From Ophelia neglecta (taxonomy: Eukaryota): a stretch of 64,000 nucleotides of DNA. Shown piece by piece: positions 6,826 through 37,389 of this stretch; within the stretch, counting starts at the first letter, position 1; every line of letters starts with the position of its first letter. Location of the stretch: assembly GCA_965285935.1 (NCBI GenBank), contig OZ260666.1, positions 37,200,001 through 37,264,000 on the forward strand. Reading direction: 5' to 3'. Position numbers and translations under genes: made by a program. Below the pieces are notes generated by a model, which searched no databases, was not told the DNA's origin, and saw only the letters and a program-made list of their open reading frames with translations.

Positions 6826-6935
6826 CACTTCCAAAAGAACCTGAGCCCATTGTAGAGGAGAAAGCCCCTGAGCGTAAGGCAGAACGTAAACCTAGCCTGG
6901 AGCCTCCTGCCTTCACAGAGGTCTATGAAGAAACC
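6826..6935 (+). CDS. Exon: short PEVK-like linker (module 4; not in ORF track)
   Basis: ccctgtag|CA ... ACC|gtaagt; ALPKEPEPIVEEKAPERKAERKPSLEPPAFTEVYEET. Confidence 0.9.
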
Positions 6936-7219: not shown

Positions 7220-7763
7220 ACAATTGAGGAGAAAAAGAGTTTAACCTTGACTGCCAAAGTTACAGGCAAACCAGAGCCAAGCATCAAATGGTTCAGAGAT
7301 GGTGAAGAGATCAAAGGCACTTTTAAAATAAAAATGAGCAAAACAGAGGAAGTTTGTACCCTGACCATATCAGGAGTGCTTAAAAATATGACAGGAATGT
7401 ACAAATGTGTAGCTACCAATACAGCTGGAGAAGCTGTCCATGAAGCAAAGGTCACAGTCTGTGAGAAAATGGAGCCACCAGTCTTTACACAGAAGCCAGC
7501 AAAGAAAGATATCTTTGAGGGTGTAACAGCCAAATTTGATGCTAAGGTGAAGGGTGTTCCGGTTCCTGAGGTGAAATGGGTTCGAGATGAGGAGGAGATT
7601 GTGTCCACCGAGCGTGTCACAGTGACCTCCAAGGAGGTGAAGGGCATTGTCAACACCACACTCACATTTGACAAGTGTGTTGTGGAAGACACCTGTGATC
7701 TTGAATGCGTTGCCAAGAACCCAGCTGGAGAAGCCACGTACACCACTTCACTTAATGTCAAAA
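7220..7763 (+). CDS. Exon: two Ig domains (module 4)
   Basis: cttgcag|ACA ... AAAA|gtaagt; 544 nt. Confidence 0.92.
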
Positions 7764-7899
7764 GTAAGTTATCCGTTTTGCATAATATATATGCATACAG
7801 CATTTACCCTAATATATGTCCAAATTTCCACTCAGAACATATTACATTTCAAAAATCTTATTATGTTGCTGCAACTCAACTATACCATTACTCTTGCAG

Positions 7900-8184
7900 T
7901 TAAAAAGGTCAAGCCTACCGTATCCAAAATAAAAGATGTAGAGATCATGGAACAGGAGGATGCTGTCTTTGAGACAGAGATTACAGGGAAACCAGAACCC
8001 ACGGTTGAGTGGTTCTCTGGGTCCGTCAAACTGGAGCCTTCTGATAAGATTATCATTGAAAAAGAAGAAACAAAGTGCAGACTGACCCTGAAGACATGTG
8101 AAGTCAATCAGACTGGGCCCATCTCAGTGACAGCCACCAATGATGCTGGCACCATTACTGGCAAAGCTAAGCTTAAAGTTAAAG
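7900..8184 (+). CDS. Exon: Ig domain (type A)
   Basis: ctcttgcag|TT ... AAAG|gtaatg; 285 nt. Confidence 0.92.
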
Positions 8185-8431
8185 GTAATGCCATAATTTA
8201 AGCCCTTTTGCTATGCTTCATCTAATCACCTTTAGCTGATTGTACAATTTGTACATATTTTGCTTTACATAGTCAAGATCTGCAATTAAATGCTTTCTCT
8301 CCTGGCTATAGAGGTGGTGTTTGGTTCTTAATTTCTTTTGTATATAACAACAAATGTCATATGCTCTCTGGTGGCTTAGGTTAAAAGAGTTCTAGATTCT
8401 ATGTCTGTTATTTGCACACCTGACATTGTAG

Positions 8432-8806
8432 CACTGCCCAAGCCCAAGGAACCAGAGCCGGAACCTGAGCCAGAGCCTGCTGTAGAGCCTGAAAAGGCTC
8501 CAGAGGCAGAGAAACCAGCCCAGGAACCTCCCAAATTCATTGAGGTATATGAAGACATGACTGTGGAAGAGACATCTACCATGGAATTAAGAGTCAAAGT
8601 CACAGGACTTCCTGAGCCAGAGGTCAAATGGTACCGTGATGGGAAGGTCATGGCTGCTACTCTCAAAGTGAAAATTACCAAGGAGGGAGAGGGAGTTCAC
8701 AAACTGACCATCAATAACATTACTGATAAACAGGCTGGAGTTTACAAGTGTGTAGCTACCAACAAGGCTGGTAAAGCCAACCATCAAGCTAAGATCAACA
8801 CTACAG
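8432..8806 (+). CDS. Exon: PEVK-like linker plus Ig (module 5)
   Basis: cattgtag|CA ... ACAG|gtaggc; 375 nt. Confidence 0.92.
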
Positions 8807-9540
8807 GTAGGCCTAAAATAACATGGTGTTTGTTAGAGAACACATGCTTTCGGGCTCATTAATAACATATATAGCTCCTTGTCTTCCCCATATACTACAG
8901 TGTTTGAGAATAGATTTCAGAAGGTGCACATAACCCTTCATCCTCCCATGCCTCACAAACTACAGTGGGTGAAGAGGTCATGATATGATGTACAAATCAA
9001 CCTCCAGGATGTATCAAACAACTTTATTGTTCTCTCTTTTCTCTATCCTTCATTTTTGAATTTTCTCTTTAATTACATTCACTTCTATTCACTCCAAGAC
9101 ACGATAAAGTGGGAATGACATTCGTCAATATTTCTTTTACTTCTGTCCATTATTCATATAATAGTATGCTGTGCACATATCATTCATTTCTTATTTCTTT
9201 ATCTATTTGAACACAATATGTCTCTCATAAACAATCTAATCATTCTACAAACGGACAGGAAATTCCTATTCATATACACTGAAACTTTTTCTCCCTGGTG
9301 CCATTCATCTAATGTTTATTGTAAAGCATATTTTGTAATTAGCCCTGAATACGATCTCTCGGAATCAACTCCTAGAGCTTCCTGAAGTTTGGAAGATGCT
9401 AGGGCCTATACACGACACAGCCTTGTGAAAAATAATTTAGACCTCTTTTCTTCTACATGTACATATGTATATAGTACTAATATCTGTCATTATTTAAGGT
9501 TGTTTACAACTAGCTTATCATACCTATTCATTGGCAAATA

Positions 9541-9717
9541 CAGTGAAACCTGCCTGTAAGACCACCTCTATATTCAGACCACCTGCCAATTCAGACTACT
9601 AGTATGAAGAGCATACTAAACACTTTCAAAATAAATTAACCTGGCTAAACAGACCACCTCTATAATCAGACCAGTATTTTCCATCCCTTGGGTGGTCTCA
9701 ATTCACAGGTTTCACTG
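9541..9717. mobile_element. Non-autonomous MITE, Tc1/mariner-pogo(Tigger)-like, 177 bp, intronic
   Basis: Perfect 12-bp TIR CAGTGAAACCTG (9541-9552) / CAGGTTTCACTG (9706-9717); subterminal AGACCACC/GGTGGTCT; internal AGACCACC repeats; TA on the left flank, TG on the right. Confidence 0.8.
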
Positions 9718-9863
9718 TGATCTTTAATTCCATCTATTACTGTATCACTATACCACAAACTTTATCATGCATTTCTCAAAGATGCTGCTCAACCTTTTTT
9801 CCTTTCTGGTACATGTCTCGTACATGTACATGATGCTACAGCTCTTCTTTTCCCTTTACCTAG

Positions 9864-9899
9864 CCCCTACGGATGTTAAGCCTAAGGCTAAGCCAGGTG
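9864..9899 (+). CDS. 36-nt candidate microexon (APTDVKPKAKPG)
   Basis: ctcttcttttccctttacctag|CC ... GGTG|gtaagt; phase 1-1, in frame with flanking exons. Confidence 0.8.
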
Positions 9900-11091
9900 G
9901 TAAGTGATTCACATAGTCCACACCATATCATCATTCATTCAGCATCTATGAATTCATACATCTATGTCTTTATGCATTCTTTACAAGTAGAAGACATGAT
10001 ATTTTGGATCCTTTCTTTGGGAAGCAGCTGTCTACTTCAAGAAAGAATCTATCATTTTGCTATTCATACACTAAATGCTTTCGACATTTATGTTGTTTGC
10101 CTTGCTACCTTTCCTGACAGTTTGCTGGCTCATTCATCAAATCATTTGATTGTTCATGTATTTATGAGTGTCATGTTGTTGGTCGATACTTTTTCTGCTG
10201 CCTTTGGAAAATAAACAAGAGCTTCCTCAGTCTGTTCTGTTCATAATATCATTTTCTTCCTCATAAAAGCATGTTTATTTTTGTAGATACATGTTTTTTT
10301 TGTCGTCCTACTTTTTCTCATTTGTTTATTTTCAGTTTTCTTAAATCATGAGTCTGATTTCCAAGCCATTTCATTTAGATTTATTATAGAATATAAAGCA
10401 AGTCTTTTGTTCTTCACTGTGGCCTAACTTCTTATTAAGATACTTTTCACATTCGTCATAAACTACTAATCAAGGAGACTCATGCTGCAATATGTCAGGA
10501 GATATTAGGGTGCACTCTATTTAATTATGGTCAAGATAGGGATTACAGCTACAAGATATTGTAACTTGATATATTTTCCAAATTCACCCCAAGCTAGTTA
10601 TAAATATGGTGAAACAGTGTTATGGGGAGATCAAACTATTTTGTCTAAGCAGAAGCAGAAATGATTTTCTCTTGATCATCACCTTCATACAAACCTTGCA
10701 ATAGATCTAAACCATCATTTCATATTTGACTGAAACTTCATTGTACCTAATTATTCACTGATATGCCTTATTAAAACTTCATGTCAGTAGTATGTTTGTG
10801 TTGATCACTTCGTCAGTTTCAGTTATTCTTGTACCTCGTATTTTCAAGTTAATGGACAGATTAGTATCATAGTAAAGTCAAGATGTTTATAAATTGGTAA
10901 CATGTACATATGTAACATCTTATTGAAAGATTGACGTAATGTTATACTTCCCATATCCTCTAAAAAGTTTAATGAAGGAACTTGCTTTCCAACAGTACTT
11001 TTCAAATGATCCAGTCTGCATTAGTGCTACAGTTGCATTATCATTATACTTGTACATTGGGTAAAACAGCTTTGTACATTAATGTTTACAG

Positions 11092-11248
11092 AAAAACTAG
11101 AAGCCCCAGTTTTCATTAGAGAGCTAAGTAACAAAGAACACAGAGAGGGCCAACGTGTTCAGTTTGATGCCACAGTTAAGGGCAAACCTAAACCTGAGAT
11201 CACTTGGTACCACAATGGTGTCCTTCTGGAACAAACAGAGAGAATCAA
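11092..11248 (+). CDS. Exon: Ig domain, N-half
   Basis: tttacag|AA ... ATCAA|gtaagt; EKLEAPVFIRELSNK...GKPKPEITWY. Confidence 0.9.
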
Positions 11249-11385
11249 GTAAGTCTAAGTGTCTAACTTCCAGGGATGGGGAGCTCTTGTGTTCTTGTTT
11301 AATATTCAATGTTCACTCAAATCGAATTATACATAATTATGTAGCTTTTAACAAAACCTATATTTTTACATATATACTATTGCAG

Positions 11386-11528
11386 ATGGGAAGTATCAGA
11401 AATTCGCAAGGAATTCACCTTGAGACTCACCATTGATGACCTAGTGTTGGAGGACGGTGGGGAGCTCAAGTGTGTGGCTAAGAATGAGGCTGGAGAAGCA
11501 TCATGCACTGCCACACTTGATATCCAAA
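11386..11528 (+). CDS. Exon: Ig domain, C-half
   Basis: ttgcag|A ... CAAA|gtaggc; ...LTIDDLVLEDGGELKCVAKNEAG. Confidence 0.9.
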
Positions 11529-12271
11529 GTAGGCTTTTATATGACATTCCGAGTTTCAATTTAATAGGATAAACCTGGCTTCAGGCCTTAATTTTGAGGT
11601 TGATTTAAGAGTAAAATACCTTTTAGAATTTGAGTGATTAACTAATTTCATTATAAAGGATGGTCTAAATATTACATTTACCGGTACCTAGTATGTCATC
11701 AGTATCACCATAAAGTTTGTCATGCCATAAGCCAATAGCATGTCACTAGCTAATGATAACTATAGTATAAACAAGGCCTAGAGATGTGTTACATCAGTTT
11801 AGTGACTTTGGAGATTATCTACTCATGGCTCTAGTTGATAGCTTTGTAGGCTAATTTGCAATATTGTTTTGGCAAATTTGTAAGTTTGAAAAGTATGGCT
11901 GGCACAACTAAACCGATTATGTGGAAATATTTGAGACCAGTCAAAATCCAGGGTATACCAAAGTATCATATGCAAGAAACCTACAAGTGAACTTCAATTA
12001 GAATTTTGTCTAGGTCAAAGTGAGGATTGTGAGAATTTCACTTTCTTTTCATGAGTATTACATTGCATAGTTCATTATTTTTTAATGTATTGCTCACTTA
12101 TATGAGCAGGCACGCAAGATTATACAGATTTAATTGCTTGACCTTAGCCTCTTTGAATGCTGAGCACCATATCGATGGTAATCCTTTGTTACCATAGCAT
12201 TAATTGATGGAACTTCTTAATTGTCTTAATTGTCTAGTTTATCTATTACCCCAATTTTATTGTTTCTGCAG

Positions 12272-12559
12272 TTAAGAAAGAAATGCCCAAAATCCTGACG
12301 AAGCCCGACCCACTTGAGGTAATGGAACACGATGAAGCGGTGTTCATTGCGCAAGTTAGTGGCAAGCCTGTCCCAAATGTGGAATGGTGGCGAGGAGACA
12401 AAAAACTGGAACCAGGCGACAAACATGTGTATGAAACAGATCACCAGACCTACACACTAACCATTAAAGACACCTTGAAGGATGAAGCAGGCATGATCAC
12501 CATCAAGGCCACAAATGATACAGGCACCATGAGCGCCTCTGCCAGGCTCAAAGTTACCC
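12272..12559 (+). CDS. Exon: Ig domain (type A)
   Basis: ttctgcag|TT ... ACCC|gtgagt; 288 nt. Confidence 0.92.
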
Positions 12560-12714
12560 GTGAGTAAAGCCATATACATTCCTTTTCTTTCGGATATTAT
12601 GATGACTATTTATACTTTTATTTACACTTTGATTATAAGTGTATGTTTTTATTCTTTTTTCATATAATGTATAACCCTTTCGAGCTATACTTAATAATAA
12701 GCATTTATTTGCAG

Positions 12715-13342
12715 CTGTAAAACCGCCAAAAATAGTGACACCTCTAAAGGACACAGTTGCCCCAGAAAATGGCCCTGGTAAATTGTCAGCCAAGATAACC
12801 GGGTTCCCTGCACCAACCGTCACCTGGTACCTGAATGGAGAAGAGATGGTGGAGAGTGAGAATGTCGTGTTTGAGTATGTGCAGAAGGACAGTACATATC
12901 ACATGACACTGCTCAATGACCTCTCCGGAAAAACTGGCACTGTCAAGATTGTAGCCAAAAACAATGGCGGAGAGGTATCATGTGACTGTCAACTGACCAT
13001 ACGTGGCCGTGCGCCCACATTCATTGAAAAACCACTGAAGTGTACCATCCTGGAAGGGGCCACCTGCATTTTTAGGACCATCATTGATGGAGACCCCGAG
13101 CCGAAAGTGACTTGGAGCAAGGGAAAATGGACAAAACTAACCAATGACGCAAACACACGTATATATTATGACGAAGCGACCAAACAACATGTGGTTGAGA
13201 AGGATAACATCAAGCCCAAAGATGCTGGCACTTACACAGTGACCATTGAGAATGAGTTTGGTAGTGACAGCACTCCAGCCACTCTCATTGTCACTAAGGA
13301 TGCCTCTGAAGCAGAAGACTGGGCGTCTGCACTCAAGAAAAC
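12715..13342 (+). CDS. Exon: two Ig domains plus DWASALKKT tail
   Basis: tttgcag|CT ... AAAAC|gtaaga. Confidence 0.92.
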
Positions 13343-13455
13343 GTAAGATAGTATTGCTATTTTATTCCCAAAAACAAGTAAATCATGCAATTTTATTTAA
13401 AACAGTAGACTTATTGTTAATAGCAAGACCATTTCAAATCAACCGCTTTCTTTAG

Positions 13456-13624
13456 GACAACTAAGGAACGTGGAGAAACAGAAGAGGACCTAGAATGGGG
13501 TAAACTGAAAAAAGGCAAGGCTAAGGCTGAAGTTGAGGCAGAGCCTGCTTTTGATATCAAACTGAAGAAGGTTGAACGACCTGAGGATGAGGTTGAAGCG
13601 AAAGAGAGGGAAATAATTGAAACT
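13456..13624 (+). CDS. Exon: charged E/K-rich linker (not in + ORF track)
   Basis: ttctttag|G ... ACT|gtaagt; TTKERGETEEDLEWGKLKKGKAKAEVEAEPAFDIKLKKVERPEDE. Confidence 0.88.
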
Positions 13625-14092
13625 GTAAGTTATACCTTCCTTGTCATGATAATGCCTATTTTCAGGTGGAATATTGCCCCCTAGATACAAGTCCTAAACA
13701 TTCTGAAGCAAAATTGTAGATCAACAATGAGCAATTATCCATACTTAGTATGAATACCCATTAAACGTTTCTCAGGTGTTGTTAAGATGATTGCATTTAC
13801 ATTTATAAAATGTCTACGGTAAATCATAATGGTGGATATACCTACCAGGAGATTAACAAGTACCCAATTGATTCACACAGACATATATAATTGAAATTCA
13901 AATAAAGAGTAGCCAATTACACGCTTGCCCTGTAGAATTAAGGAAATAAATATTAACATATTCAAAATGTCAAGATCATCACCCAGGTATTTTCTGGGAC
14001 ATAGATATATGTCAACCCCTGCAACCGTAGGTCTTGTATTTTTGAGGAAAAAGTAGAAAGAACTACATAGAATCATTTGATATGTAATGTAG

Positions 14093-14287
14093 AAAGAACG
14101 TGAGAAAACTGAATTCAAGAAAGTTGAGCGCGAGGAGGTAGAAATTGAGCAGGCTGAGCCTAAACCTAAACAAGTGGCAGAAGAAGAAATAACTCCTGAG
14201 CCTGAAAAGGATAAATACAAGAGAGCTCCCAAGAAGGAACCTGAGAAACCAGAGGAACCTGAGAAACTCAAGACAGGCAAAGCTGAA
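14093..14287 (+). CDS. Exon: PEVK-like E/K/P-rich linker
   Basis: aatgtag|AAA ... GAA|gtaaat; phase 0-0; KEREKTEFKKVEREE...KKEPEKPEEPEK. Confidence 0.85.
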
Positions 14288-15129
14288 GTAAATGACTCCT
14301 TTGCGAATCGATGTCATTGTCGTGACACCCTTCATAACAAATACCTGGATGTTGTGTGCCAAGTCCTCCATACTAACACTCTGAAGTTTTGCTGTTTGTG
14401 AAGTAATTAACTGCCTTCTACAATCTCTGATGCAGCACTTTTCTTTCCAAGAACACTGGATAAACATTTGCACAATTCCTTTCCAACCAAATGATATTTT
14501 CCCATTGGAGAGCATGATTACATAACAGAATATTTGTTCACCCCCCGCGCCCATCCCACACCTATTTGTTATATTAGTTGAGTAGTATATGAATGGGTAG
14601 GTGATAGTAGTAGGTAATGTCAGGATGATTCATAAACTATTTTAGTCACAATTGTTCACAGTAAATTCTAGACATAGCAAGCCATAAAAAACAGCTAGGA
14701 AACAATTTATGGGCTTGTACATTTCTATAATTTATAGAGAACAGAAATGATACTGATTTAGTTATATGGGTTTACATATATTAATACTTTGGTACAATAA
14801 TTGTGTGTCATATGTTTGGATACACCTGTAGTATTCTTAAAGACTGTTGCGTGTAAATTAGCAGACTAATAAATAGAGGTTTACATCTTCAACACTAAAT
14901 TTGTAGCACCAAAAGTAAACTTGACAGCACATTTAACCAAAGACTATTTAAATGCCGCTTAAATCCACATTTCTTGGACAATTGGAATAACTTAGGCCAA
15001 TCTACAATTCAGTCTTAAAAGAATTGAGCATTCATTCTTATTCCATAGTATGATGTTCAGAGATAGTTTTTTGTGTGAATTGAGTGTTTATATATTATGC
15101 CTATTCTACCCTAAGCTTTCCCTCTACAG

Positions 15130-15270
15130 TTTACGTTCACTAAGGAGCTAGAAGACCAGACTGTGACTGAAACTCACACTGCAGTGTTTACCTGTGAGGT
15201 TAACAAAAAGAACATCCCAGTGCAGTGGTTTGTCAACAAAAAGGAGGTTGTCCCAGGACCCAAATATCAG
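15130..15270 (+). CDS. Exon: Ig domain, N-half
   Basis: ctctacag|TTT ... CAG|gtaaaa; FTFTKELEDQTV...FTCEVNK...VQWF. Confidence 0.9.
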
Positions 15271-15490
15271 GTAAAAAGCTGAAAAGAAAATGGCTAGAGT
15301 AAAAACAAATGCTGGCTGGCTATGATATTTGAATATTTATGACAGTTTTGGAATTGTTTGAACAAAATTTCAGCCTATTTGTATATCAGTTCAGGAAAAA
15401 TAAATGTCATGCTGTTAGTTCACAAACATATAGATGCACACACAACACCAGGACAGAGGCTTATGTTCACTCATTTATTTTGTCTTAAAG

Positions 15491-15608
15491 GTTCTGGTTG
15501 AAGACCTCGTACACAAGTTGTCCATAACTATCTGCAAACCTGTGGATGAAGGGGAGGTTACGGCAGTCTTCAAAAAAGCTACCACCACTGCAAAACTAAC
15601 AGTTGAAC
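15491..15608 (+). CDS. Exon: Ig domain, C-half
   Basis: cttaaag|GTT ... GAAC|gtgagt. Confidence 0.88.
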
Positions 15609-16448
15609 GTGAGTAACATTTGAAACTTTTTATGTGTAAGGGCAGCCCCTACATCATCCCCTTCACTCTCAAAGTCATCATTTCATCATCGGAACCATCA
15701 CTGTCATTTAGGTCTTTTTCTGAGCACTACACGCTACCTGTAGTCTGTGCGGTGCTGTGGAGTTGCGATATCAGCCTTAATATGCTCTAAAGATAGGCCT
15801 CCCCTTAGTCCATGTTGTAAGTGGCACTCTATGTGCACCAGAGCTACAGCGCAGCTTCACAGCGTAGTGCCCAATAGAAACACCCCAAATTGTTAATGTT
15901 ATATTATGTCACATGGAGAAAACTGAATGGACTGCAGACTCTGCTCTATATCTGGCTTCAGGTACTGTAGGTCTAACTTTTGGCATGGTTTTCTGTGTTA
16001 CATTTTGTTGTTACTAGCCACTAGCCATGCTCAGTTGCTCACTTATAATAAAAAAAATAAGAGTACAAATCAGCCATGAAGTATGACTGACAATTCTTTG
16101 ATAGTCAGACATACAGTATGACTAAAATTACATATGAAAACTCTTTATCCCATTGCATGCTCAAAGACCTGATCCTTTAATTTAACGGATATGTCACAAG
16201 TCAGCTGATATTTGTAATAGATGTTTAACCTTATTATAAAACAACTTTCTTCTGAACATTGAAAGTATACACCCTTTCTTCCTGCTTTTACAAATGTGTG
16301 TTATCCTGACCAAGATTTTTATTACTAAGATGTGTTTTCGTGTCTGATAGCTTTTAACCAAATGAAGTTGATTTTAATATTAACAGATATGACACGTTTA
16401 CAGACAAATTGGCTTAAATAACCATGTGTTTTATTGTTTCGCATGCAG

Positions 16449-16721
16449 CCGTGTCAGAACCTGCATATTTCACCCGTATGTTGGAAGATGCCACTGTGGC
16501 CGAGGGCACAGTCGCTGAGTTTGTGTGCGAAGTTCACCCCCATGATGCCGAGGTCACATGGTACATAGATGGCATTGAGGTCCATCAAAGTAACAAATAC
16601 AAATTAAGCAAAGCCCATGCTGAACGCCAGTTGGAGATACTAAATGTAATACGCAAGGATGATGGCAAAGTTTCAGTAGCAACTTCAGATGTGGAGTGTT
16701 ATGCTACTCTTACTGTGGAAG
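16449..16721 (+). CDS. Exon: Ig domain
   Basis: catgcag|CC ... GAAG|gtaggt; 273 nt, phase 1-1. Confidence 0.88.
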
Positions 16722-18070
16722 GTAGGTTGGAAGTGGGAAACATTGCTGGCTTATTTATAGAACTTACAGGCCGAATGGATACTTATCATGAAAAAAAAAT
16801 TACATTTTAAATGCAAAAAAAGATGACCAGTAGCTTTTAACACACTCAAATAGCTTACTCAAATTATACTGTAGTCAAATACAATACATAATGTTTTGTT
16901 ACATTTTATAAAGATTAATAATACTAAAATACACCTACATATTCCTCATAAAAGAAAATCAATATTCCATAGACATATATAAGCCAAATAGCTTCGAAGA
17001 TATTGGTGAGTGTGTTTAACTGACTGAAGGAATGTTTATGTATGACTGAACGAAAACTTTAAATATGGATGAAATAACATATTTGGTTCACTAACGAATG
17101 TTCAACATTGGCTGGACACCTGCAAAGTACAAAGCATGATGAATTAGACTTAAAAAGGTGCAAAACAAAGTTCTAGTAGATGTCCATTCCAGGCATTTAA
17201 ACATGCCGTTTCCAATATAATTAATTCAACCTGTTCCGATATATAGTAGTCCTATTTCCTTTAGACCCAGTACATTTAAGACATTTTTTGAAAATAAAAG
17301 AGCTTTCCTAAAAGTATAATCAATTTGAATGCTCAGTGTAGATCCCTCTTTTATTGGAGTTCAAACAAAGGAAGTTTTATGTATGTCTTTATGAATGCTC
17401 CAAAAGGATTGACCAAGGCAACTGACAGAGATTAGAACTTAGTGATTAAACTAGTTTTTCAATTACATTTAAAACTATCTTACTATTTATTTTTTGCACA
17501 TACCACCATTTATTAACTTTAACATAGACTTGTTTGCAATGCCTTATTTGTAGATACTGAATTTAGATGCCCCTCCCCCATGGTCTAAACCCCAGGTCAT
17601 GAAGGAGGTGTTCTTGTAGAAACCTAAAAACTAGGCATTTAGATGTAGAACTATGCCCATTGTCTAATGCATGCATTTGTATCTATATTATTGTGGTGTT
17701 TCAATTGAGAAAAATAGAGACCCATCCTTCAATATTCTGAAATGTAACATGCATGTATTCTTTAATTAATGATTATCACCTACATTTTATTCTAGTATGA
17801 TTTATTCACCATAGCAATTAAGACGTTCTTACCGTTGTTATCATTTCTTGATTAAACATGATTGTTAGAAGTTTATTTTCATTAGATAGTTTCAGTTGTA
17901 GCATTTTTATTTCAAGTGTTTTTTTTCTGTATATTTACACTCGCTTTGAGAATTCCAAAGGTAGACCGTGAATTGTGAGTTATACGTGGCCACTGTTTAT
18001 ATTATTCTTGGATTAATGATATAGATTGATCAAAATGTTATTGGTTACATTAATGGGACTTATAGGGGAT

Positions 18071-18085
18071 GGGGGGGGGGGGGGG
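18071..18085 (+). repeat. G15 homopolymer, intronic
   Basis: ggggat followed by 15 G. Confidence 0.9.
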
Positions 18086-18207
18086 TTATTTCAATCTATG
18101 AATATGCCTTTGGAATTCTCAGGGCCATCCATCACATTTATTCTGTACCTCTATCATTTTCCCTAACACCCCTGCGTTGCAATAATGAGTGCCTTTCCAC
18201 TAACTAG

Positions 18208-18480
18208 TGTCAGACACAGAGGTGGTTGAAACTCGGCTGTTCTATGAGGCCTATGAGGAAGAGTTTGTGCACACAGCGGCTGAGTTCTTGTGTGCTCGGG
18301 GTGGGGTGGACACGATGGAGATCCACTCGACTTCTGATTCACAGGGCAAGGTCACCAAGGCTGTAGAGGGTGCTCAGCAGAGACGCTGGGTGGTCAAGAA
18401 AGTGTTTCTAGACAATCGTAGTCGCACAAGAGTAGAGCGTTGGTCTGTCAAATCCTATGTAGACTATGTATGCACTGCTG
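18208..18480 (+). CDS. Exon: 91-aa non-canonical (non-Ig or degenerate Ig) domain
   Basis: ctttccactaactag|TG ... GCTG|gtgagt; 273 nt, open, phase 1-1, GC-rich relative to flanking introns. Confidence 0.75.
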
Positions 18481-18674
18481 GTGAGTCACTAACACATTGC
18501 CGTTACAGCTAACACTCATTTGTTGTCTAATAATAGTATTCTTTTATGTAACTTTTATTTGTAGTTTAGTTGTTTTTTTCGAGTTGTTTTTACTAAAACT
18601 TGATGATAATTATTTCACATCATTTTTTCACTAGTTTCTCATGCACTTAACAAAACCCAAATTTTCTCTATCAG

Positions 18675-18962
18675 AGGCCTTGGCTGAAGTAGCTTTGGGT
18701 TTTATGGAAGATGCAGTTTTCTCTAAGCAAACTGTAGAATTTATCTGCCAGCTTAATTCACCTTGTGAAGATGTGAAGTGGCTTAAAGATGGGAAAGTGC
18801 TGGCAGCAGGGAAAATATTCAAAAAGTATGAAATGAGCAATCAGTTTGGAACAAATCATACCCTCACGGTCCATGATGTCACATTGTTTGACCAGGGAAT
18901 ATACACATTCAAAGTGGTGGAACTAGGAGCAAGGTTGAAAACTGATACAACAGTTACCAGAG
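18675..18962 (+). CDS. Exon: divergent Ig domain (may read through to a stop at 19135)
   Basis: ttctctatcag|AG ... AGAG|gtgtgt; 288 nt; VEFICQL...VKWLKDG...HTLTV...DQGIYTF. Confidence 0.8.
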
Positions 18963-20181
18963 GTGTGTTAAGTGACCATTCTGACAGTGATTATAGTGTA
19001 ACTAGCCCTATCCCCAAATCGCCTGATTTCCTTTCTTTACCAGTATATGAATTTAGTCCAATATCTACTAGCGAATGCGTAAATGATAGTCAGGAAAACG
19101 ATGACTATTTGTATAAATTCCAAAGTTTGAGTTAAAATTTAGTTCCAGACTTTCATAAAGAGAAATTTGAGGTAAATTTCCCATAGATGAACTTAACTGG
19201 TAGTCAATTGTCATTATAAATAAACTTAAAATAATATTTACCGTTTACTCATAAGTTAAAAAGAATGTTAAAGCATTCACAAATTGTCTAATACAATCTG
19301 AAAAAAACTAATCTTGTACAGAATCATGAAAATCATCATTACTATTTAATATAAGTGTAAGAAATTAATTGCGAGTGACCAACAATTACTGCTTGATTTA
19401 CCTTAAGGTCCCCAACTCAAACAATAATAATTTGCTATATTACTGTAAAAATTTCTTTCATTATTAGACATGATGACTGTATATATTGGCACAGTGAAGG
19501 TTTAAAAATATGTTCTGTAAATCTAATTCTATAATATGATTATTGCGTGCATGTATCAAAACCGATTAAATATTTATATATGGTATTTTATGTCATTCTT
19601 GTGTACATACTTTTTTGTTTTGTATTACCTTTTACTATAATTTGTGATAAAATGTCTATATCTAACCTGGGACTAGTTTCAATATACTAGTCCCAGATCT
19701 AACCATTAGGATGCTAATATAATTTCTATGTTTGGGCATATGTTAGTTGCGTGTGTCTGTAAAAGCTTTGCATCATGTTGATAATGCATGCAACTTTTTT
19801 ATCGCTTATGTTGTTAGTGCATGTATTTTATGCGATATCTCAGAAGGAATATATGTTCTCAACATTGCAAAACTTTGCAACAAGTACATCAATCTAAATA
19901 ATATATTATCTTCACATAACAAACACATGCTTAAATAATTTGCTGTTGACTAGCTTCTTCACATTCACACTCCTGTACATGTACATGCCTGCAATTCAAT
20001 TTCAAGCCAGATACTCTAACTGTATAATAGCATATTTGCTGGTACCTATGCACAACTCTTTCTTGGTGAACTGCTTCCACAGCTTAGGGAGCAAACATAC
20101 AGAGCAGTATGATTTGCTTAAAAACCAGCCCAACATTCTTAGCAACAATGATGGATGAAATGTGTTTGTTTTTGTTAATAG

Positions 20182-23100
20182 AGAATGCAGCTCAAAGACG
20201 ACATTCCGAGTGGGTGGGAAGTTCATTGCATGATGTTAGTAAATCGCCTCTCCGTGCCAGACTCGCTGCTGAGCTTAAGAGAAGGTCTGTATCCAGCTTG
20301 ACCTTTGAACCAGGGCTGCGTGCTGTTGACTTTGATACAAGTGGAGGTGGTCTAGATGAAAGCTTGGCCAGTCTGGACTCGGGGGAATACCAAGATGCAT
20401 CCCGCCTAGTGAGACGTAAAAGCCAGTTTGTTGAAGAAACCATAGATTCATTTGAGTCGAGAGCTAGTATTGCAGAGTTGACTAAATCACTCCCTGTCAT
20501 CAATGCTCCTTTGACTACTGAGGATAATGATGACGATGACCAGGTTTTTATTAATGAAACAGATGTTGCCATGTCCCCTCCCAGCAACACACATCAAAGC
20601 AAGACGTCCTCACCAGCAAGGAGCTTCAGAATGGAGAGAGAGGAGATGGAAAGCATGGTTAACAGGCTTTCCACCTCAGTTGCAATGGGTCAAGACCCCA
20701 GGCGCAAATCAGACTTACTTTACTTTTCCTACACAGAAGGTAAATCTCCTGATTTAGTCGTACATCCACAAGATGAACCGAGACTGTCCCAGCGCTTGTC
20801 AGTTGCTTCACCTCTGCAGCTTCCAAATTGGGGTTCATCTATGGAGGAGCAGGATTCATTATCCTACTCTCTCCCATCAGATCTAGATGATCAGACTGCA
20901 GGTAGGGATACAGTCGAGACAAAACCTGATCATGATTCTTGTAAATCACAACCAATTACAAATGATGAAATCGATTGTGTTAGGGACTCCTCTGTAAAAG
21001 CACACAAGAAGGCCTTCATTTCGTCAGATGTGTCTATGTGTGCCACGTCTGATATTTTAAAAGTTTGTGTTCCTCAACCCAGTGAATTCGAAGCTCGCTC
21101 CTCACCCCACCTATCTCCCTCATTAATTAACACAGCATCTACCATCGATTCTATTCCTGACGTTTCTCAAATTTCCGAATCTCAATTTGAGAACAAATCA
21201 GTTGTTGCCCGAGGGTTTGACTTTGATACTCCTCAGCCATCACTGCGATCACCTAGTCATTCTCCAAAGATGGGAAGACGCTCACTGAGCAACCTGCCGA
21301 ATGTTTCCTCAAAGACCTCTGACAATACAGGGAATCTTCCATCTCCTAGAATGGGTTTAAAAGCAGTAAGTGTACATGTGACTTCCAGTAGTTCACAAAA
21401 GAAACCGGACAGTGATAATCAGAAAACTTCTCAAATTCAAGAAAGAAAGACCAGTAGTCCATTACAAACCTCGTCTACGTTTAGTAGGTCAGACAATGGT
21501 ATCAGCTGCAGAGAAGACGTTCCTAGTGGATTAAGCGAGTCTGATTTCGACGAATACACGCATAGAATCAGAGATTCAGTTGGGAAGAAAAGGCAAGGAC
21601 GAAGGGCATGGGGTGATACAAGTAAAGACTCCAGCGACACTGACAATCCTAGATCAAACGCATCCAGTCTAATGGGCACCGACTCTTGCATAGTCTCATC
21701 TGACGATTCCGACTCTGACACCCCAAGTGAGGAAGAATACGATCTCACGTCAACAATTACCACGTCTACTGTCACTGAGGAAGATGATTGGTCGTTTTAT
21801 GTTTCAAATGCAGGGGAAGACAATGAAACTGCACAGTATGTTGACCAGCCACATATTATTTATATTGAGGAAGACATCAGTGATCTAGATTTGAGAGAAC
21901 AAATCAGGCAAGTCAAACTCAGAACCCAAGAGACCATCCCCGAACTAACGGAAGAGTCGGCGTCAGAATTGGAGACAACATCTGAATTACAGGCCATATC
22001 AGAATCTGACTCTAGCTCTGTTCATTCAGGTTACTGTGATGAAGCTGTTGGGAGTTCATACTCAGATACCGATTCCGATGGGCAATCAGACAAATCTGCC
22101 AACTCTGTACTAGTGGAATATCCAACCTCTTCTCAGCATTCATCAATAGTGGAGTCGATAGTGTGCGAACTGTCAGAGAGTGAGTCTGAGAAATGTAAAA
22201 CCCCTTGGAATCAACAGGACAATAGCGACCACAGTCCAATAGATGTCATAGATTTTCCGGACCAGAATCTTAGAGTTAGTATTGCAATGGAGAATGTTGA
22301 TCTTGAAATGGAAGAGAATGATACAAACGAGGATCCTTTTTCAGAGGAAGAATTGTTTGAACCAAGTGGTGTGCAGATTACTGAAACATATACTCATATT
22401 ATTTCATCGGAAAATACCCAAACATGTCTATCAACAGACGATCAAGTAGTCGATGCCAAAAACGAACAACCAATGTCATCTAGGAAAGGTCGACGAAAGT
22501 CTGCACCTGACGCTGGCGAATGGACATCATCAGCCAGACCAAGATCAAAATCTGCAGATGAAACTAAGCAGGCTGCTATCTTGTACAATGTAGATACACA
22601 CATTGAAATTAAATCACCAAAGAGAAAATGGAGAAGGTTTAAATCAATGGCTTACAAGTACTTCTCCCCCGAAAGAAAAGCAACCTTGAAAAGGAGTCAG
22701 TCAGAAAAGGCTTTGAACGTCGAGGAAGACGACGAAGGAACTGACTCAGATTGCAGAATACATAGAAGCTTGTCCACATACTCCCTTGGTGGAGAGACTG
22801 ATACAGATACGAATCCATCCTTGTCAAGACCCATTTCTTTTGAAAGACTTGATGTAATTCAGTATGGCTCTGGACATTCTTTGGATCAAAATATGTCGGA
22901 TGAGGAAGAAAATCAAAACTGGTCTGACGAGTTTGACAGAATACACAACCAGTCAATTGATCAGATGTCTCAGGAAATTTTAGGGATGAACTCTGAAATC
23001 CAGCACGTTGATGACGCTGGTTGTGTAAACAGGAGAGACAGAGTATGGTCTTCGTCTGTAACTGTCTTCAACATCAACCAAGACGATCCATCCACCATTC

Positions 23101-26100
23101 ATCAAGAAGGAAATGCAGAGGTATACCCGTCCGAAGCCAATGGCAGAAACACACCACACGCTTCAGAACAGAAAGAGGAATATGTAGCAAATATTGTGTC
23201 AGATCAAATATTTGATGACGAAAAAGGACTGTTTGTCAATCCAGACAAACAATTGGAAATCGTTGAAAAGATTTGGAAGGATAATTTGACTTTTCAGGAA
23301 GCCGAAAAAAACACATTATTGCCTATGAATGATACAGAAAACAATGGGAGTGCAGAACTTAAACAAACTTCTTCTGCGGACTATTTCGCCAGTAAAGTCA
23401 TTCAGGACATCATGGCTTCTTTTGCTGGAAATTCTTATGATTATCAGGACGAAAACCAGGAAGAATATCAGACTGATACCGAAGATGAGGGCATTGATGT
23501 AAGCAATTCATACGTGCCTGTCCAGGATACAGAAACTAGTTTTGACTTAAATGTGTCTACATTTGCAGATGACACCATGAAAAATATTGTTCTCGGGGCT
23601 TTGTCAGATATCTTGGACCGCATCAACCCAAGTGGAATAAAGACGGATCCTTTTTCACATGCAAGACAAGAATATCAAAGCAACCAGACAGAAACTGATT
23701 TTCATCTTAACGCCCAAATTGTAGACAAGAGTACCTCAGATTCTCAAATTCCGGTACCAGTTGACGAAAACAGTGTCACAAGTGCTCCTGTATCAATGGA
23801 ACCGATGCAATCAAAAGGAAAAGCCAATGAGGATTCTGAATATACAGACAAGTCTGGTTCTATCATTGCGGGATCACTGGATGAAGGAAATTGCACCTGC
23901 TCCATAGCATCCACTGAACCTAGGCAATCCGATGCATTTGCAAATCCTTTTATGCAAAGCTCAGCCAGTGACCGGTTTGACGCAAAATATTCTGAAAGCG
24001 ATGAAGAGGCAGATACGTGGGCAGGAAATATCCAAAATGTATGCAAAACAGATTCAATATGGTCCCAACAAACTACTGATGGGTTGAAACTGACTACACT
24101 GGGCAATTTTGATACCAATTCCGGCAAAATCATATCAGAGAACGTTCAAGATCAACAGTCAAATACTTTGGAAATACCAGGTGCTAGTGAAATACAACCA
24201 GGAAAAGACGATTTTATATGCGAAAAAGAAGATTGGAACCAGCAGATGTGTGTTGAAAATCCTGATATGCTGGAAAATACAAAAAAAGAAGATACCTTTT
24301 CTGAAAGCGATACTGCTAAAGGCTCTGGAACAAATAATATGTCTGAGCTGTCTGAGTTTGTTTCGGATGCTACAGCAAACATTTTTTATGGAGCTATTTT
24401 TGCCGTTCAACATCACTTGAGCGAACAAAAAGACAGTGAGGAAATGCATACTGGGCCATCAAACCTCTGCCTGGAAAAGGTCCGTTCAGAACCTCGTGAA
24501 TCCGAAGATGACTGTCATCTTTCCCAATCGGAACATTTTAAGATAGAGTCCAACCAAGGAAATTCTGAAAATGACCAGACGGGCCTATCAGCCCAGACAG
24601 GGGCTTCATTTCTGCATATTGCTGATGGCAAGGCTTTCGAAACAGTATCCGGAGCTCAATACAATCAAATGGAAAGGCTTGGAACATTCACAATTGAAAC
24701 ATCGAAAGCACCATTTGTACAAATTACACAATCAAACATCGAGCATTATGATATTGAAGCGGCTCTAGATAACCAGGAAATGGTTGGCAAGGAGTCCCGA
24801 GAAGTTGAGCATGTAAAGGAATCAGAGAGTAGTTTACAATTAAACACCACAATACAACATAGTGATACAGAAATGATGGTTGACACAAGGGAAGACTTAG
24901 AAATGCCACCCAATGGAGACCAGATTTCCATTCTCCCATCAGAATGTATTGCAACTGGCCTTTATGGAGATACCAAAAATGTGCATATTGAGGATCAAAA
25001 TCTACCTATGCATTCTGGGAAGGAGCTGGCCAGATATGCGAATTTTTCTAACTCATTTATACAAGATATAATGGCTTCCGCAATAAAAGCAGTGCTAAAA
25101 ATTAGTACATCCGAACAAAAAACAACATTAATGGAAGAATCGTGTTTATCTCCAAAAAGCCATGAGTATACATACAGTGAGAGAGGTGTTGTTGAAGGAG
25201 ATGGATCTGTTCTGGATGAGTCATGTGCCAAACTGTCCACCTGCTCACATTATGTCCCTGAAAAAATCGAAGCAGGACAAATAGATATGGCATTTGTTTC
25301 TCCAGAAAAGCCATCTGATGTAGAAAACGCGACATTCAAATCATGCAGTAATGATGAAAGTTCAGTCACACCTTTTCATATTATACCTACGGAAACTTTC
25401 TCTACTAACTCTAGTGGTAATGACGACTCTGAAAGTAGACCAACTGTTGAATTCCAGATGAAATCAGACTCGTCGACAGTTACAAACAACAAATTGAATT
25501 TAGTCAGTAATTCTGGGTCCACAGTACCATGCTCACGGCTTGATAACACAATAGAAACAACAAATTATCCAAATGGAGATGCCGAAATTCCAATAAATCA
25601 ATCTTGTGTTGCCAAAACCTCAACAACCGCATTCGGCAATATAAGACCTACAGAAGTTCCACTGGGTATAAGTGACACCGTTATAAGTTCTAGAAGTGAT
25701 ACAGATTCTACAGCGAAGCAATCTGATGATATGACATCTAAGACTGCTTTTATAGGGGATGATCGGTCGTTTTCGTTCCAAACTGCGAGAGAAGAAACAC
25801 CGGTGCAAAGTTCTGACGTATATATGAATACAGGAACAACTTCTATGTCAGAGGAATACAAACGAAATGTGGTCCTCACAAATACCAACTCATTAGAAAA
25901 TGTTGTTAGTGACCAGACTCTTGGTGTTGGAAATAATGAGCATATTGTAAATATGACAGATCCATATTCCAAAGTTGCTTTCCATGAAAGTGCAAGCAAG
26001 AAGCATTCACGTCTTTCTCACGCCAAACGTAATGCCGTTTCTAAAGGCAATTCCTTACCAACGAAGTCTAAGGGCAGTCTGTTCGAGCAGAGTGTTTTTC

Positions 26101-27845
26101 TGATACCAAATGATGAACCTCTAGGTCAGATGGAAGCTTCAGTGTCAGAAGTAACCCATTCTGAACATTTAAAAACATCAAAAGCTAAAATGTTTTCTGC
26201 CTTTATTATGGACGGTAAAGGAATTTTCGAAATTGATGACAACTCAGAAGGAATGCCGCTGACTGACCCAAATAGCCCATTCAGGCATGACAGCATAGAT
26301 GACAACTCTGAAAGTATTTTCAAACAAACACACGACAACCATTCTACGACACACAGTATAAGGGAGAAGGATGTTCATGCCCAACCATTTTCTCCAAACC
26401 TGACTGAAGCAATTGATGGAGGAGGCACACAAGTTGCCCCTGAAAATGAGGCTGATAACTTGCCTGGGGAAAGATTCGGGAGTGACAAATCAGATATTTT
26501 AACGCCAAGAAGTCAACCATCATTAGACAGTAGCTTGAAGGAATCGTCTATTTCTTCAGATCACCAAAAAGAAAACTCAGGCAATTTCTCTCCACCATTG
26601 TCCAGACCGCGGAGCATGTCTTTACCAAAGGAGTCACTTGCCCAAAATGAAGTAGATAACAGAGGTACTGGGAATACCGACACGTTAATGGAAACAAGTG
26701 ATTCAAACTTTACGACACTTTCAATGAATGAGTTTAGCAAAGAACGGCCTAGAAGTATTTCTTTAAACAAAGATTACAAGGACGAGTATAGTAGCATGTT
26801 GAACACATACTACGATGATTTAAAATCTGTAAGTGACACCGAGTCCCACCAGCGAGCATTTCGGTCAATCAATGAATCTCGAAGGGAGCCGACTTTCTCT
26901 CCCGGAGAAACAAGAGAATACATTGCTCCTTCTCATGAGGATATATCCAGGTTACCGGGAGATAGTGTTACAGAACACATTGAGAGGTTTTTTCGATCAG
27001 TAGATTTAGATGCTAGAACATGTGCAGAAATCAGCCCCAAGAACGATAAAAATCAACAGCAAAGTGAATACCATGACAAACCAATGGCCACTTTAAACAT
27101 AAAAAGAGATTCGACCCTTACAACTTCTTCCTCAAGAGATACAAAAGATGGTGAACGGCTTTTTCAGAAAGTAGTCACCGAAGGGCCAATTATCAAACCA
27201 GTGAAGCTTTTATCAGGCGGCACGCAGTTATATGGCCAATCTCCTGGTGTTCCTCATTTGGTAGAGACAAGTTCTGAAAAATTGAAACGTACAACGATGA
27301 ACAAAGAATATGACAGTTTGTCTGAAGTGAGCTCACTGACAACTACGTCTACTGGCACAGAGTGGAGCACTGGGGCATCTACTAGTGGTTCTATTCCTGT
27401 AACATATGATTCCGAGCAAACAACGGGTAAAATGCCTCCTGTTTTTATAGGTTTAGAACCACCATCTACCGGTATTATGATAAATCAAGAAAGACAATCT
27501 GTTTATTCTGCTGTCGGAAGTACATTTTTACCTCGAACCCCAAATAGACGATCTGCATCTGATGAAAACCTTTATCCGACCTTTATGTCATTCGATGAAC
27601 CCAGGACTACTCCGAAGTCTAGGTCAACATCCCGTTCAAGCTCCAGGTCCCAATCTCCTGTTGCCTCAGGCAAGGTCAAGATCAGGCGAAGAACACAGAG
27701 GATGGCATGTCAGCGGCCATCACGGCCGCTTAGTCAGCAATATGAACAGGCATCTCCAGAAGCCGAAGTTAGGCAAAGATCTAGCTCATTTGGGGCCACT
27801 GATCGCGCAGAGCTTCTTAAGGAAGGCGATTCTGAGGAATCCTGA
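20182..27845 (+). CDS. Giant alternative terminal exon, ~2554 aa, Ser/Asp/Glu/Thr-rich and largely disordered, ending in TGA
   Basis: 7.7 kb uninterrupted ORF; phase-1 acceptor tgtttgtttttgttaatag|AG matches the upstream phase-1 donors; no Ig/Fn3 motifs; stop at 27843-27845 followed by AT-rich non-coding sequence with poly(A) signals. Confidence 0.85.
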
Positions 27846-34452: not shown

Positions 34453-36473
34453 AGCTACCTCTTCCTGGTCCTGGTGATGCTTCCCCTGTGTGCTCTCCTG
34501 ATTTAACGTACAGTCCCCCTCCCACCCATCCTATTCTCTCTGACCTCTTAATACCAGTACGCCAAAAGGCATCGGATGAAAAATACGTCGTGACTGTGAC
34601 CAACAGCTAGCAGTAATAGATGACCGCACAGAATTTGATATTTCTGAGCACATGGTCTTGGCTCCTAACACAGTTCGATCAGCAAAGATTATTGATCAAT
34701 CTGGAATGAGCGAAAATGGCCTTGTCGATAATGAGGAACTTTTACATATAGACACGCAACCATCATCTATGATGTCATTGTTACCCACGGATCAACGGAA
34801 GGCGGATTTTGTAAAACCCAAAGCAATTCGTGAATTTTGTGACGATGAATTAATGAGATACAACAATTGTATACTCTTTGGCCCTGAACCAGTAGAGTCG
34901 GCAAATGAACTGATTACACCAGATGAAATATTTATCCCAGATGATAAGGTTCATACTGTTGTGAATTTTGAAATATCAGAGAAGCGAGACACTGCCATTT
35001 CACAAGGGCAAAAAGCACAAAACCTGGCAATGGCCAAGCTTACGGATTTTCCCGTTCTCGTCAAATTCATGAAAGAAAATGAAGAAAACAGAGGAGAACA
35101 ACCCGAACCCATCGAGGATATACTAGAAAGGTTCTTCGACTCCATTTTGTCGGACACCAACCAAATGGAATCTACTCATGAACTAGCTATGCCGGAAGAA
35201 ATGTGCATGCGTTATGAAGATGTTCATATTGTTCAAAACTTTGAGGTTACAGAACCACAACAGAACTTAGCTGACATAACTAAACAAGAGGCAGAACAGC
35301 TTGCTGTAGCAGAAATGTTGGAATTGCCAGCTTTTATCAGATTTGTCGAAGAAACGGAAAAGTTGTCTGATGGAACGCCTGCTCCAATCGAAGATATCCT
35401 TAGGAAATTCTTCGATTCGATTATTAATGAAACAGAAAGTATAGAAACCACCACAGATTTAGAAATACCTGAATCGACGTATATAACAAACAATGAAGTT
35501 CATACTGTCGAGATTTTTCAAGTTCACAAAGATATGAAACGTGACCAATTCAAAGAACAAGAAGCAGGACAATTGGCGTTGGCAGACATGTTAGCTTTGC
35601 CCGCTTTCGTAACATTCTTAAAAAACAGAGACGATAAAGGCAGCAATGCAATAACTCTAACTGAAAATGTTCTATCGGAATTTTTTGATTCGATTCTGTT
35701 TGAAACAGAGCTACTTGAATTAACAATAGATATAAAACCGGTGGATGAGTGTTTGTTATGCGCTGAAGATCACATTACTTGTCAGCCAGAGACACTAAGC
35801 AGTAGGGGTTTAGTTGACGTTGTTATAGAGAGAGAACTAGTCAACTTACCAGAGGTAGAAAGTTCAAGTTTTCCAAGTAAAGAGTTCAAAGAAATTGAAC
35901 ATGTAGCTGCGAAACCAACGGACAATGATGTAGAAACGTCTGTCAAACGATTTTCTAACTTAGCCCTTTATGAAAGTGTGCTATATGAAACAACTGACCC
36001 AATGCATAGCCCAAAAGGATGTGAAGTAGAAAGCATTAGGACAGTCTCTAGGTTTGAAATAGCAGATATATATGAAACAGAATCACGGAAGAGACAAGAT
36101 TTTGATGTGGATCTTGATGAAGATTTCTACATTAAAATTCCAATTTTTGCTGATGATGAGCATCATCACAAACACCTGCAAAGATTCGAAACGAAACGAC
36201 GAAAACGATATCAAAGACTTGAATCTATTGAAGAAGAGCTAGTTCCTGAAATTGAGAGGCCAGTCATTACAGAAATAAAGTTATGCAAAGATGAGGCAAT
36301 TTCTCCCAAAGAGGAGGATATAATGGAGACAAGACCTGATGCTCAGAGCCAATCAGATATTGACAAGTTAACTGGAATGCCTCCCGCAGACTCGCTAGTA
36401 GGTGTCAGTTATGATGAAAGAAGGGAGTCAGACAGTACCATTCAGGAGGCGGATTCTGCCGTGGATGAATCAG
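34453..36473 (+). CDS. Large acidic non-Ig exon (~670 aa) with three ~91-aa repeats; apparent 1-nt frameshift at ~34579-34583
   Basis: Acceptor cacttttgtag|AG and donor TCAG|gtatcc are both phase 1; long ORF 34580-36586; 5' boundary uncertain. Confidence 0.7.
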
Positions 36474-37389
36474 GTATCCTGGCATTATCGTTGTGCACGA
36501 ACGACTCAAAACTAATAAAAAGAATCTTGCAGGTTATTCAATTCATTTCTGGACAATGTAATCAATATGTGCAACTCTTTGGGTAGGTTATGTGTCTTAC
36601 CAATATTTATACTAATCTTAAATCTATCTGAACAAATTATATCTATGTCTGTGTAGATGTTTTAGCTATCTATATACCTTAGCGAGCTTATGGTTGCATC
36701 GTAGGATACATGATGAAGTGGTTGAAACAGTTTATCATGGTCAGGTTACATATACAGCTATATGTAGACAACAAATGTGCATAAAAGCATCTATGGATCA
36801 AGTCTGACTTAACATGCTTTCCTTTTCTTACTTTCATTTCTCTTCTCTTTTATATGCTTCACTTTGTGTTTTTCTCGTATCATATATGTATTCATTTATA
36901 CCTGCTGCTCATCTTGTCTACACAGTAAGTCTGTAGAAGGAGTTCCATGTTATGGATTGTGTGTATGACCAGCTGGTATAGACAAAATGCAAATCCATTG
37001 ATTTTTCACCACGTTTTGGGGGTTAAGATCACATTCTTTGAACTTTGGTTCGAAAAAAACTGTATGAGCATTCTATCCATTGGCCTTTCTTTGTTAGAAA
37101 TATGCCATTCGTTACTTTATCATCACTGAGTCAGCATAGAATTCTCACCATTCATTTCATTTCTCAATAGAAACATATTTGAGGTGTGTTACTTTTCAGC
37201 ATGTATATAATAGGTGTCAGTTCTTTGTGGATAGTCAAAGTCCTCTAACATTCCTTCTTGGGTCATTTTTCATAAGAATGTGACTTTTGGTGTTTTGTCA
37301 ATGTTGTAAAAACTCAGAAATGAAGGCAGCTACGCAGATAAAACAGTTGGCCGTTTCCCAATTGATTCATACTTGATTTGATAATGCAG

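Follow-up and report, generated by a model that had tools for sequence, protein, structure and literature searches.

The locus considered here raises the question of what the long, mostly disordered tail of a putative truncated titin-like protein might do, and specifically whether short amphipathic helices set along that tail could tether cAMP-dependent protein kinase (PKA) in muscle. The stretch of DNA analysed (the window; 64,000 nt, positions 37,200,001-37,264,000 on the forward strand of contig OZ260666.1 in Ophelia neglecta genome assembly GCA_965285935.1, 762 Mb in 223 contigs) is occupied by a titin-family gene on the + strand. Between two blocks of immunoglobulin (Ig) exons, this gene includes a giant, stop-ended exon (20182..27845, +) that was delimited using an open frame, a splice signal and a collinear orthologous exon, and it is this exon that encodes the helices. 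They recur beyond chance, fit the published rule for helices that dock the type I regulatory subunit of PKA, some fully and others in part, and two to three of them are conserved in an orthologue.

An initial annotation, made from the nucleotide sequence, had described four hydrophobic islands that share the spacing F-[AVS]-x-x-h-h-x-[DN]-I-h-x-x-[AF]-h, at ~23385, 23562, 24357 and 25044, with IQDIMAS in the first and the fourth, and translation of the frame confirmed each of these observations. With the Phe of the pattern counted as position 1, the four 14-residue islands start at frame residues 1093, 1152, 1417 and 1646, and rank 2nd, 5th, 7th and 9th for hydrophobicity among the 14-residue windows of the exon. 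When the exon was shuffled 20000 times with its composition preserved, the four-island pattern, which had been defined after the sequence had been read, was expected 0.009 times and occurred at most twice, against the four matches observed. A looser pattern, in which only positions 8-10 and 13-14 were fixed, picked out exactly the same four islands. The IQDIMAS core common to helices 1 and 4 is written with a different synonymous codon at six of its seven positions, suggesting that the likeness has been held at the protein level and is not the product of a recent DNA duplication; these codon differences point to selection on the peptide.

A profile built from all helix copies was searched against the whole 762 Mb genome and matched at five helix sites, every one of them in this exon. 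The site additional to the four annotated initially, helix 0 (23181..23237, +; profile score 28.9 bits), is a fifth, related amphipathic island in which positions 1 and 2 are Val and Ala. It begins Tyr-Val-Ala-Asn in O. neglecta and Tyr-Tyr-Ala-Asn in the orthologue, and AlphaFold2 drew residues 1027-1034 as a helix. Helix 1 (23385..23438, +; AlphaFold2 helix 1089-1105/1106) starts with Phe-Ala, and its positions 5, 6, 9, 10, 13 and 14 are hydrophobic. Helix 2 (23562..23621, +), which likewise starts with Phe-Ala and extends its hydrophobic stripe to positions 17-18, is the best conserved helix and lies inside the blocks with the highest local confidence in the AlphaFold2 model (predicted local distance difference test, pLDDT, 46-50). 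Helix 3 (24357..24410, +; AlphaFold2 helix 1411-1446), with Phe-Val at positions 1-2, Thr at 6 and Gly at 12, is the weakest fit to the pattern. Helix 4 (25017..25103, +) opens with Phe-Ser, carries Val-Leu at 17-18 and is among the longest of the predicted helices, being drawn over residues 1637-1665.

All five islands were thus drawn as helices, 8 to 36 residues in length, with pLDDT <50 almost everywhere. In the model of the tail (mean pLDDT 33; predicted template modelling score, pTM, 0.16-0.20), the helices are isolated and no confident fold surrounds them. A folded helical bundle was rejected for lack of support in AlphaFold2, which gave no sign that the helices pack against one another. 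Nuclear export signals were also rejected, the known classes being judged by eye not to suit all four of the annotated helices, as was a basic calmodulin-binding helix, given that acidic sequence surrounds four of the five helices.

The rule against which the helices were compared defines an anchoring helix as 14-18 residues with a hydrophobic face at positions 2, 5, 6, 9, 10, 13, 14 and 17 (PMC12083921, 2025). Helices that prefer the type I regulatory subunit (RI) over the type II subunit (RII) start with Phe or Tyr (position 1), follow it with an almost invariant Ala (position 2) and often have a hydrophobic pair at positions 17-18 (PMC12083921), as the initial annotation had assumed in stating that RI-preferring A-kinase anchoring proteins (AKAPs) open with an aromatic-Ala pair. 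Anchors stripped of the residues at positions 1-2 no longer bind RI, and a helix into which pairs of this kind are introduced at each end is shifted towards RI (PMC12083921).

Ten helix copies, drawn from both species, were aligned without gaps on this register. Hydrophobic residues are helically spaced in all ten, which bears out the proposed resemblance to the periodicity of anchoring helices. Position 1 is Phe or Tyr in seven copies, position 2 is Ala in seven and position 9 is Ile, Leu or Met in ten; positions 5 and 10 are hydrophobic or Thr in every copy, and position 13 is Ala or Phe in nine of the ten. The register is broken at position 6 in four copies, which have Ser or Thr there, and at position 2 in two, which have Ser. 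The Phe/Tyr-Ala start is present in helices 1 and 2 of both species and in helix 0 of the orthologue. Positions 17-18 are Ile-Leu in helix 2, Val-Leu in helix 4, Val-Gln in helix 3 and Ser-Tyr in helix 1, which was counted as agreeing with the hydrophobic preference. Overall, helices 1 and 2 fit the type I rule fully in both species, and the remaining helices fit it partly.

Conservation was assessed using the one orthologue found, a protein of 1802 residues (P0001, locus L006; ENA assembly) that was recovered by three word-based searches, whose length limits would hide full-length titins. An HMMER search of 1.84 billion representative proteins with residues 1041-1740 gave no match, no orthologue was found in two metagenome scans with the conserved blocks, and no paralogue of the helix region was found in the O. 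neglecta genome. The orthologous giant exon is collinear with that in the window, the position of its stop codon is kept, and the Ig exons that follow it are in the same order and 53-74% identical. The last 330 residues of the tail (26814-27842) are ~48-51% identical to those of the orthologue, and the conserved tail end and stop position argue for a genuine protein C-terminus. The tail cannot be aligned in its middle part, where identity is 19%.

Within residues 1000-1200, identity to the orthologue is 62.5% within helices 0-2 compared with 22% outside them (Fisher P = 6.5e-7). Helix 0 is identical at 8/14 positions to its counterpart (L006:2373-2414). Helix 1 also has 8/14 identical residues (L006:2574-2615) and helix 2 has 11/14 (L006:2754-2795), or 14/20 across the longer helix, and all hydrophobic positions are kept in both. 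Helix 2 is the second most conserved window within residues 941-2235. A matrix derived from the four annotated motifs found three sites in the orthologue that scored above all 500 shuffles, namely the counterparts of helices 1 and 2 and a helix-4-like copy (L006:3753-3794) in the unalignable middle; the orthologue copy of helix 0 scored 9.5, within the range of the shuffles. The expectation that the helices would be more conserved than their flanks was therefore borne out, in one orthologue, for motifs 1 and 2, which stand far above their surroundings, and failed for motif 3. Fourteen single-base differences were seen between 20109 and 24399 in sequencing runs from one sample, and all eight that change an amino acid fall outside the helices, numbers that are too small for a test. 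The sole polymorphism seen within helix 2, at 23600, is synonymous. An in-frame six-base insertion polymorphism is also present in that sample, at 23780.

Taken together, these features suggest that the helices are docking sites for a four-helix dimerisation/docking domain of the RIIa fold, most likely that of the PKA type I regulatory-subunit dimer, a reading to which a probability of about 0.45 is given. Docking exons for both subunit types are present in the O. neglecta genome, one for RI (L003:1444-1602, with a GT donor after it) and one for RII (L001:1498-1629, minus strand, ending at a GT donor). A prediction of the complex between a 35-residue piece containing helix 4 (25014-25118) and two copies of the RI docking exon gave an interface score (ipSAE) of 0.60 in each of three runs, compared with 0.15, 0.02 and 0.01 for the controls, a level at or below which the calibration of the tool passed only 5 of 78 solved complexes together with all 4 of the mismatched pairs that passed. 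The pLDDT of the partner was 74-75, contacts agreed between runs to at least 92%, and the verdict returned by the tool was 'weak support'. The multimer prediction envisaged in the initial annotation thus gave, for helix 4 with RI, a weak pass over its controls. The score is a measure of likeness to RI-anchor complexes, not of binding.

The RI docking exon has Val at one position, which we take to be the site of the first inter-chain disulphide cysteine of mammalian RI-alpha, and the RI docking dimer encoded by this genome may therefore not be disulphide-linked. Beyond the RII docking exon, a possible retrogene was found, an intronless RII-like gene (L004, G000:C8:43907777-43910869; open frame 1465-2574) that encodes a complete RII-like regulatory subunit, with two cyclic-nucleotide-binding domains in addition to an inhibitor-type site and a docking domain.

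The mechanism proposed would be as follows. A truncated isoform of a titin-like muscle protein would have as its C-terminal part a long disordered tail encoded by the giant exon, and four or five short amphipathic helices in this tail would each dock one regulatory-subunit dimer, most likely of type I PKA. The Ig part of the protein would anchor the isoform in the sarcomere, the I-set Ig exons upstream on the same strand being the candidate targeting region. Several PKA holoenzymes would thereby be brought together on the tail, close to muscle substrates that include the tail's own conserved basophilic Ser sites. On this basis, the exon is a plausible new multivalent AKAP candidate in a titin-like protein. 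The more specific proposal, in which a non-vertebrate titin-family protein is a multivalent RI-selective anchor whose Novex-3-like tail, with four to five helices of the Phe-Ala type, holds several type I PKA holoenzymes in the sarcomere, is put forward only tentatively and is on balance doubtful.

Basophilic Ser/Thr sites are enriched in the exon and lie only outside the segment with the helices, which agrees with the substrate sites on either side that the initial annotation had proposed. The exon contains five RRx[ST] sites compared with 1.2 expected (P = 0.0075), none of them within the acidic, helix-bearing segment (residues 1000-1880). The orthologue retains several of the basophilic Ser sites that flank this segment on both sides. 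These sites fit the idea of substrates placed beside an anchor, in which case they would be phosphorylated by the tethered kinase, but they suit any basophilic kinase equally.

A number of results weigh against anchoring of PKA through RI. The aromatic-Ala start is found in motifs 1 and 2 and is broken at position 2 of motifs 3 (Val) and 4 (Ser), and it is also absent from helix 0 (Val-Ala) and from the helix-4-like copy of the orthologue (Met-Ala). Helices 2 and 3 each combine a Gly at position 12 with a Thr at a core position, and patterns that describe anchoring helices are degenerate. Conservation rests on one species pair, in which helix 3 has no counterpart either by alignment or by matrix. 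Peptides lie outside the calibration of the complex prediction, which was controlled with unrelated proteins rather than other amphipathic helices, and because RI-AKAP complexes have been solved, the pass obtained with helix 4 may reflect no more than a likeness to them. A search of PDB sequences with helix 4 and with the ten-copy profile returned only chance-level matches, and the best score in an ESM Atlas feature search with helices 0-2 (0.77) was at the level of noise. The three runs that contain this stretch, all from one sample, give no transcript support, as they cross the intron at 19136-20181 without a joint and so behave as DNA.

Scans with profile models were likewise negative. In the Pfam scan for RII-binding or AKAP motifs that the initial annotation had suggested, no AKAP model (RII_binding_1, AKAP_110 and others) matched the helices or the genome: 40-residue pieces around the four annotated helices gave no AKAP family in Pfam at E up to 10, and the AKAP_110 model found no match in the whole genome, a result that carries little weight because the control genomes were silent too. 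No search by profile or by sequence linked the exon to a known anchor, as is to be expected of short, independently evolved helices. In the published account, anchors arose independently many times, with the RI-selective ones placed at the base of the vertebrates (PMC12083921).

The alternative that survives best is that the helices dock some other sarcomeric partner, or associate with one another, and share only a general amphipathic look with anchoring helices. This is possible, although it was rated below RI docking. The initial annotation had suggested as a test that only these islands should be conserved, and the helices are indeed kept amid divergent flanks, but further islands, basic or non-helical, are kept to the same degree, around residues 820-855, 977-990, 1991-2004 and 2031-2044. 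Several such islands imply that the tail is a string of many short interaction motifs, and their presence, the lack of similarity to known AKAPs in the searches and the weakness of the support from the predicted complex all suit a different partner. What such a partner would leave unexplained is the aromatic residue at position 1 and the Ala at position 2 in most copies, and the 2-5-6-9-10-13-14-17 register of the hydrophobic stripe. Self-association finds no echo in the AlphaFold2 model, where no helix packs on another, though the confidence of that model is too low to exclude it.

Two of the conserved non-helix islands lie at 26079-26120 and 26199-26240 (~residues 1991-2004 and 2031-2044), where 10-12 of 14 residues are conserved amid divergent sequence. 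Among the best conserved parts of the exon is also a strongly basic island rich in Lys/Arg and aromatic residues (22566-22664), which is near-identical in the orthologue and could be a nuclear-targeting, lipid-binding or calmodulin-type site. An Arg-x-Arg-Ser-Ser-Ser site near the end of the tail is kept in the orthologue.

A titin-family host would also suit docking of the helices to a pair of EF-hands, in the manner of titin Z-repeat 7 and alpha-actinin, an arrangement that would link the tail with either the Z-disc or a light-chain-like protein. Titin Zr-7 and the alpha-actinin neck carry a 1-4-5-8 motif (PMC4259493), and positions 2-5-6-9 and 6-9-10-13 of every helix in the exon satisfy that spacing. 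The Z-repeat 7 complex with EF3-4 of alpha-actinin is similar, with a small helical domain docked by a short amphipathic helix of a titin-family protein (PMC4259493), but the Z-repeat helix has a shorter hydrophobic core and no aromatic-Ala start. The helices described here are conserved over 14-19 residues, or four to five turns, which is longer than a 1-4-5-8 core requires, and most copies start with an aromatic residue and Ala. Pfam scans, with the Titin Z-repeat models included, gave no family for the exon. A basic character is usual for calmodulin-type ligands, whereas the surroundings of four of the five helices are acidic. Docking to EF-hands is therefore considered unlikely.

More improbable still is docking of proteins of the RIIa fold other than PKA subunits, such as ropporin, SPA17 and CABYR-like proteins. 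These share the interface of the AKAP docking domain (PMC12083921), and at least one RIIa-fold exon in the genome (L002) is neither RI nor RII. However, such proteins are known from cilia and flagella and not from muscle, and the Phe-Ala start is described as a determinant of RI binding (PMC12083921).

That the four islands are a chance pattern, or functionless neutral remnants of an old internal duplication, draws on the definition of the pattern after reading and on the loss of helix 3 from the orthologue, but is very improbable in view of the excess of matches over shuffled sequence, the conservation of helices 0-2 at about the level of folded Ig domains between flanks at 22% identity, and the retention of the peptide shared by helices 1 and 4 while its synonymous sites differ almost everywhere.

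Docking of the RI dimer, as preferred here, can be set beside several known anchors. SKIP (SPHKAP) and AKAP220 (AKAP11) have several anchoring helices and are said to sequester several PKA holoenzymes (PMC12083921). Like the product of the giant exon, they are long, largely unstructured proteins with tandem helices, and their RI-selective helices start with Phe/Tyr-Ala. They differ in having two helices rather than four or five, the host in the present case is a titin-family muscle protein, and there is no sequence homology, the AKAP_110 and Pfam scans being without a match. smAKAP combines an aromatic-Ala start with a hydrophobic pair at positions 17-18 (PMC12083921), and its layout is shared by helices 2 and 4 (in helix 4 with Ser in place of the Ala), but smAKAP, a small acylated protein of the membrane, has one helix only and no sequence relationship to the exon.

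Myospryn (CMYA5), synemin, troponin T and ZASP/Cypher are sarcomeric AKAPs that also anchor PKA at the myofibril. They differ from the candidate described here in that they are listed as RII anchors or have a single helix, whereas here the helices sit within a titin-like protein. Myospryn is listed as a partner of titin, and no titin-family protein, titin included, is among the sarcomeric AKAPs listed (PMC3874566).

In its layout, the exon resembles that of Novex-3, a truncated vertebrate titin isoform that ends in a giant alternative exon, likewise stop-containing and set among titin Ig exons in a gene that continues downstream. The same arrangement is seen in the window, where the giant exon contains a stop, the gene continues beyond it, and the stop and the C-terminal 330 residues are kept in the orthologue. 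The comparison with Novex-3 is one of layout, as no vertebrate homologue of the central part of the exon was detected by the HMMER search with residues 1041-1740 or, within their length limits, by the word-based searches. The function of Novex-3 is still called unknown, and the only mentions of AKAPs in the same source are of the centrosomal AKAP9 and of a cited study of AKAP6 (PMC11178842).

PKA control of muscle proteins is central to muscle tuning, and vertebrate titin is itself a PKA substrate. Binding of RI by the helices would place several copies of the kinase on the scaffold itself, beside conserved phosphorylation-type sites. RI-selective anchoring would also be pushed back to before the vertebrates, with consequences for the published account of its origin (PMC12083921). 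The layout of the titin gene in the window is unlike that in vertebrates, and the genome has a single RI docking exon; both features, with the scarcity of relatives in very large protein collections, point to a non-vertebrate genome. RI docking would provide a first molecular function for a Novex-3-like truncated titin isoform, and a testable partner would be useful.

Upstream of the giant exon, I-set Ig domains are encoded by open frames at 2162-19135, and downstream, further Ig exons start from ~31.9 kb and Fn3 domains from ~48.8 kb. A single unbroken open frame of 2578 codons (20109-27845; DNA of ~40% G+C) lies between the Ig blocks, and the start of the exon within it was set at 20182 by a polypyrimidine tract and AG at 20169-20181. 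The stop codon is the TGA at 27843-27845, and poly(A)-signal hexamers are found at 27996 and 28039. An uninterrupted frame, together with the retention of its stop and of the tail end in the orthologue, suggests that the exon may be expressed, spliced to the upstream Ig exons and used as a terminal exon. The product is mostly disordered, with 15% Ser and an abundance of Asp, Glu and Thr, and a scan of the whole giant exon against Pfam at E up to 1 gave no family.

The orthologous locus also differs from that in the window in some respects. An extra amphipathic helix of another type is encoded in the orthologue (L006:4086-4139), just after a shared Ala-Phe-Glu-Thr anchor, and at ~24627-24700 in the window, which corresponds to it by a weak local match, the hydrophobic pattern is lost. 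This difference suggests a turnover of helices, by gain and loss, along the tail. The orthologous giant exon shifts reading frame once near L006:1083-1203, which is as likely to be an assembly error (the name of the contig suggests ~fourfold coverage) as a real frameshift. Further downstream in the window, an open frame of 644 codons without a Pfam match (34652-36586) lies between the Ig exons that follow the giant exon, and a 412-residue call is present at a similar place in the orthologue.

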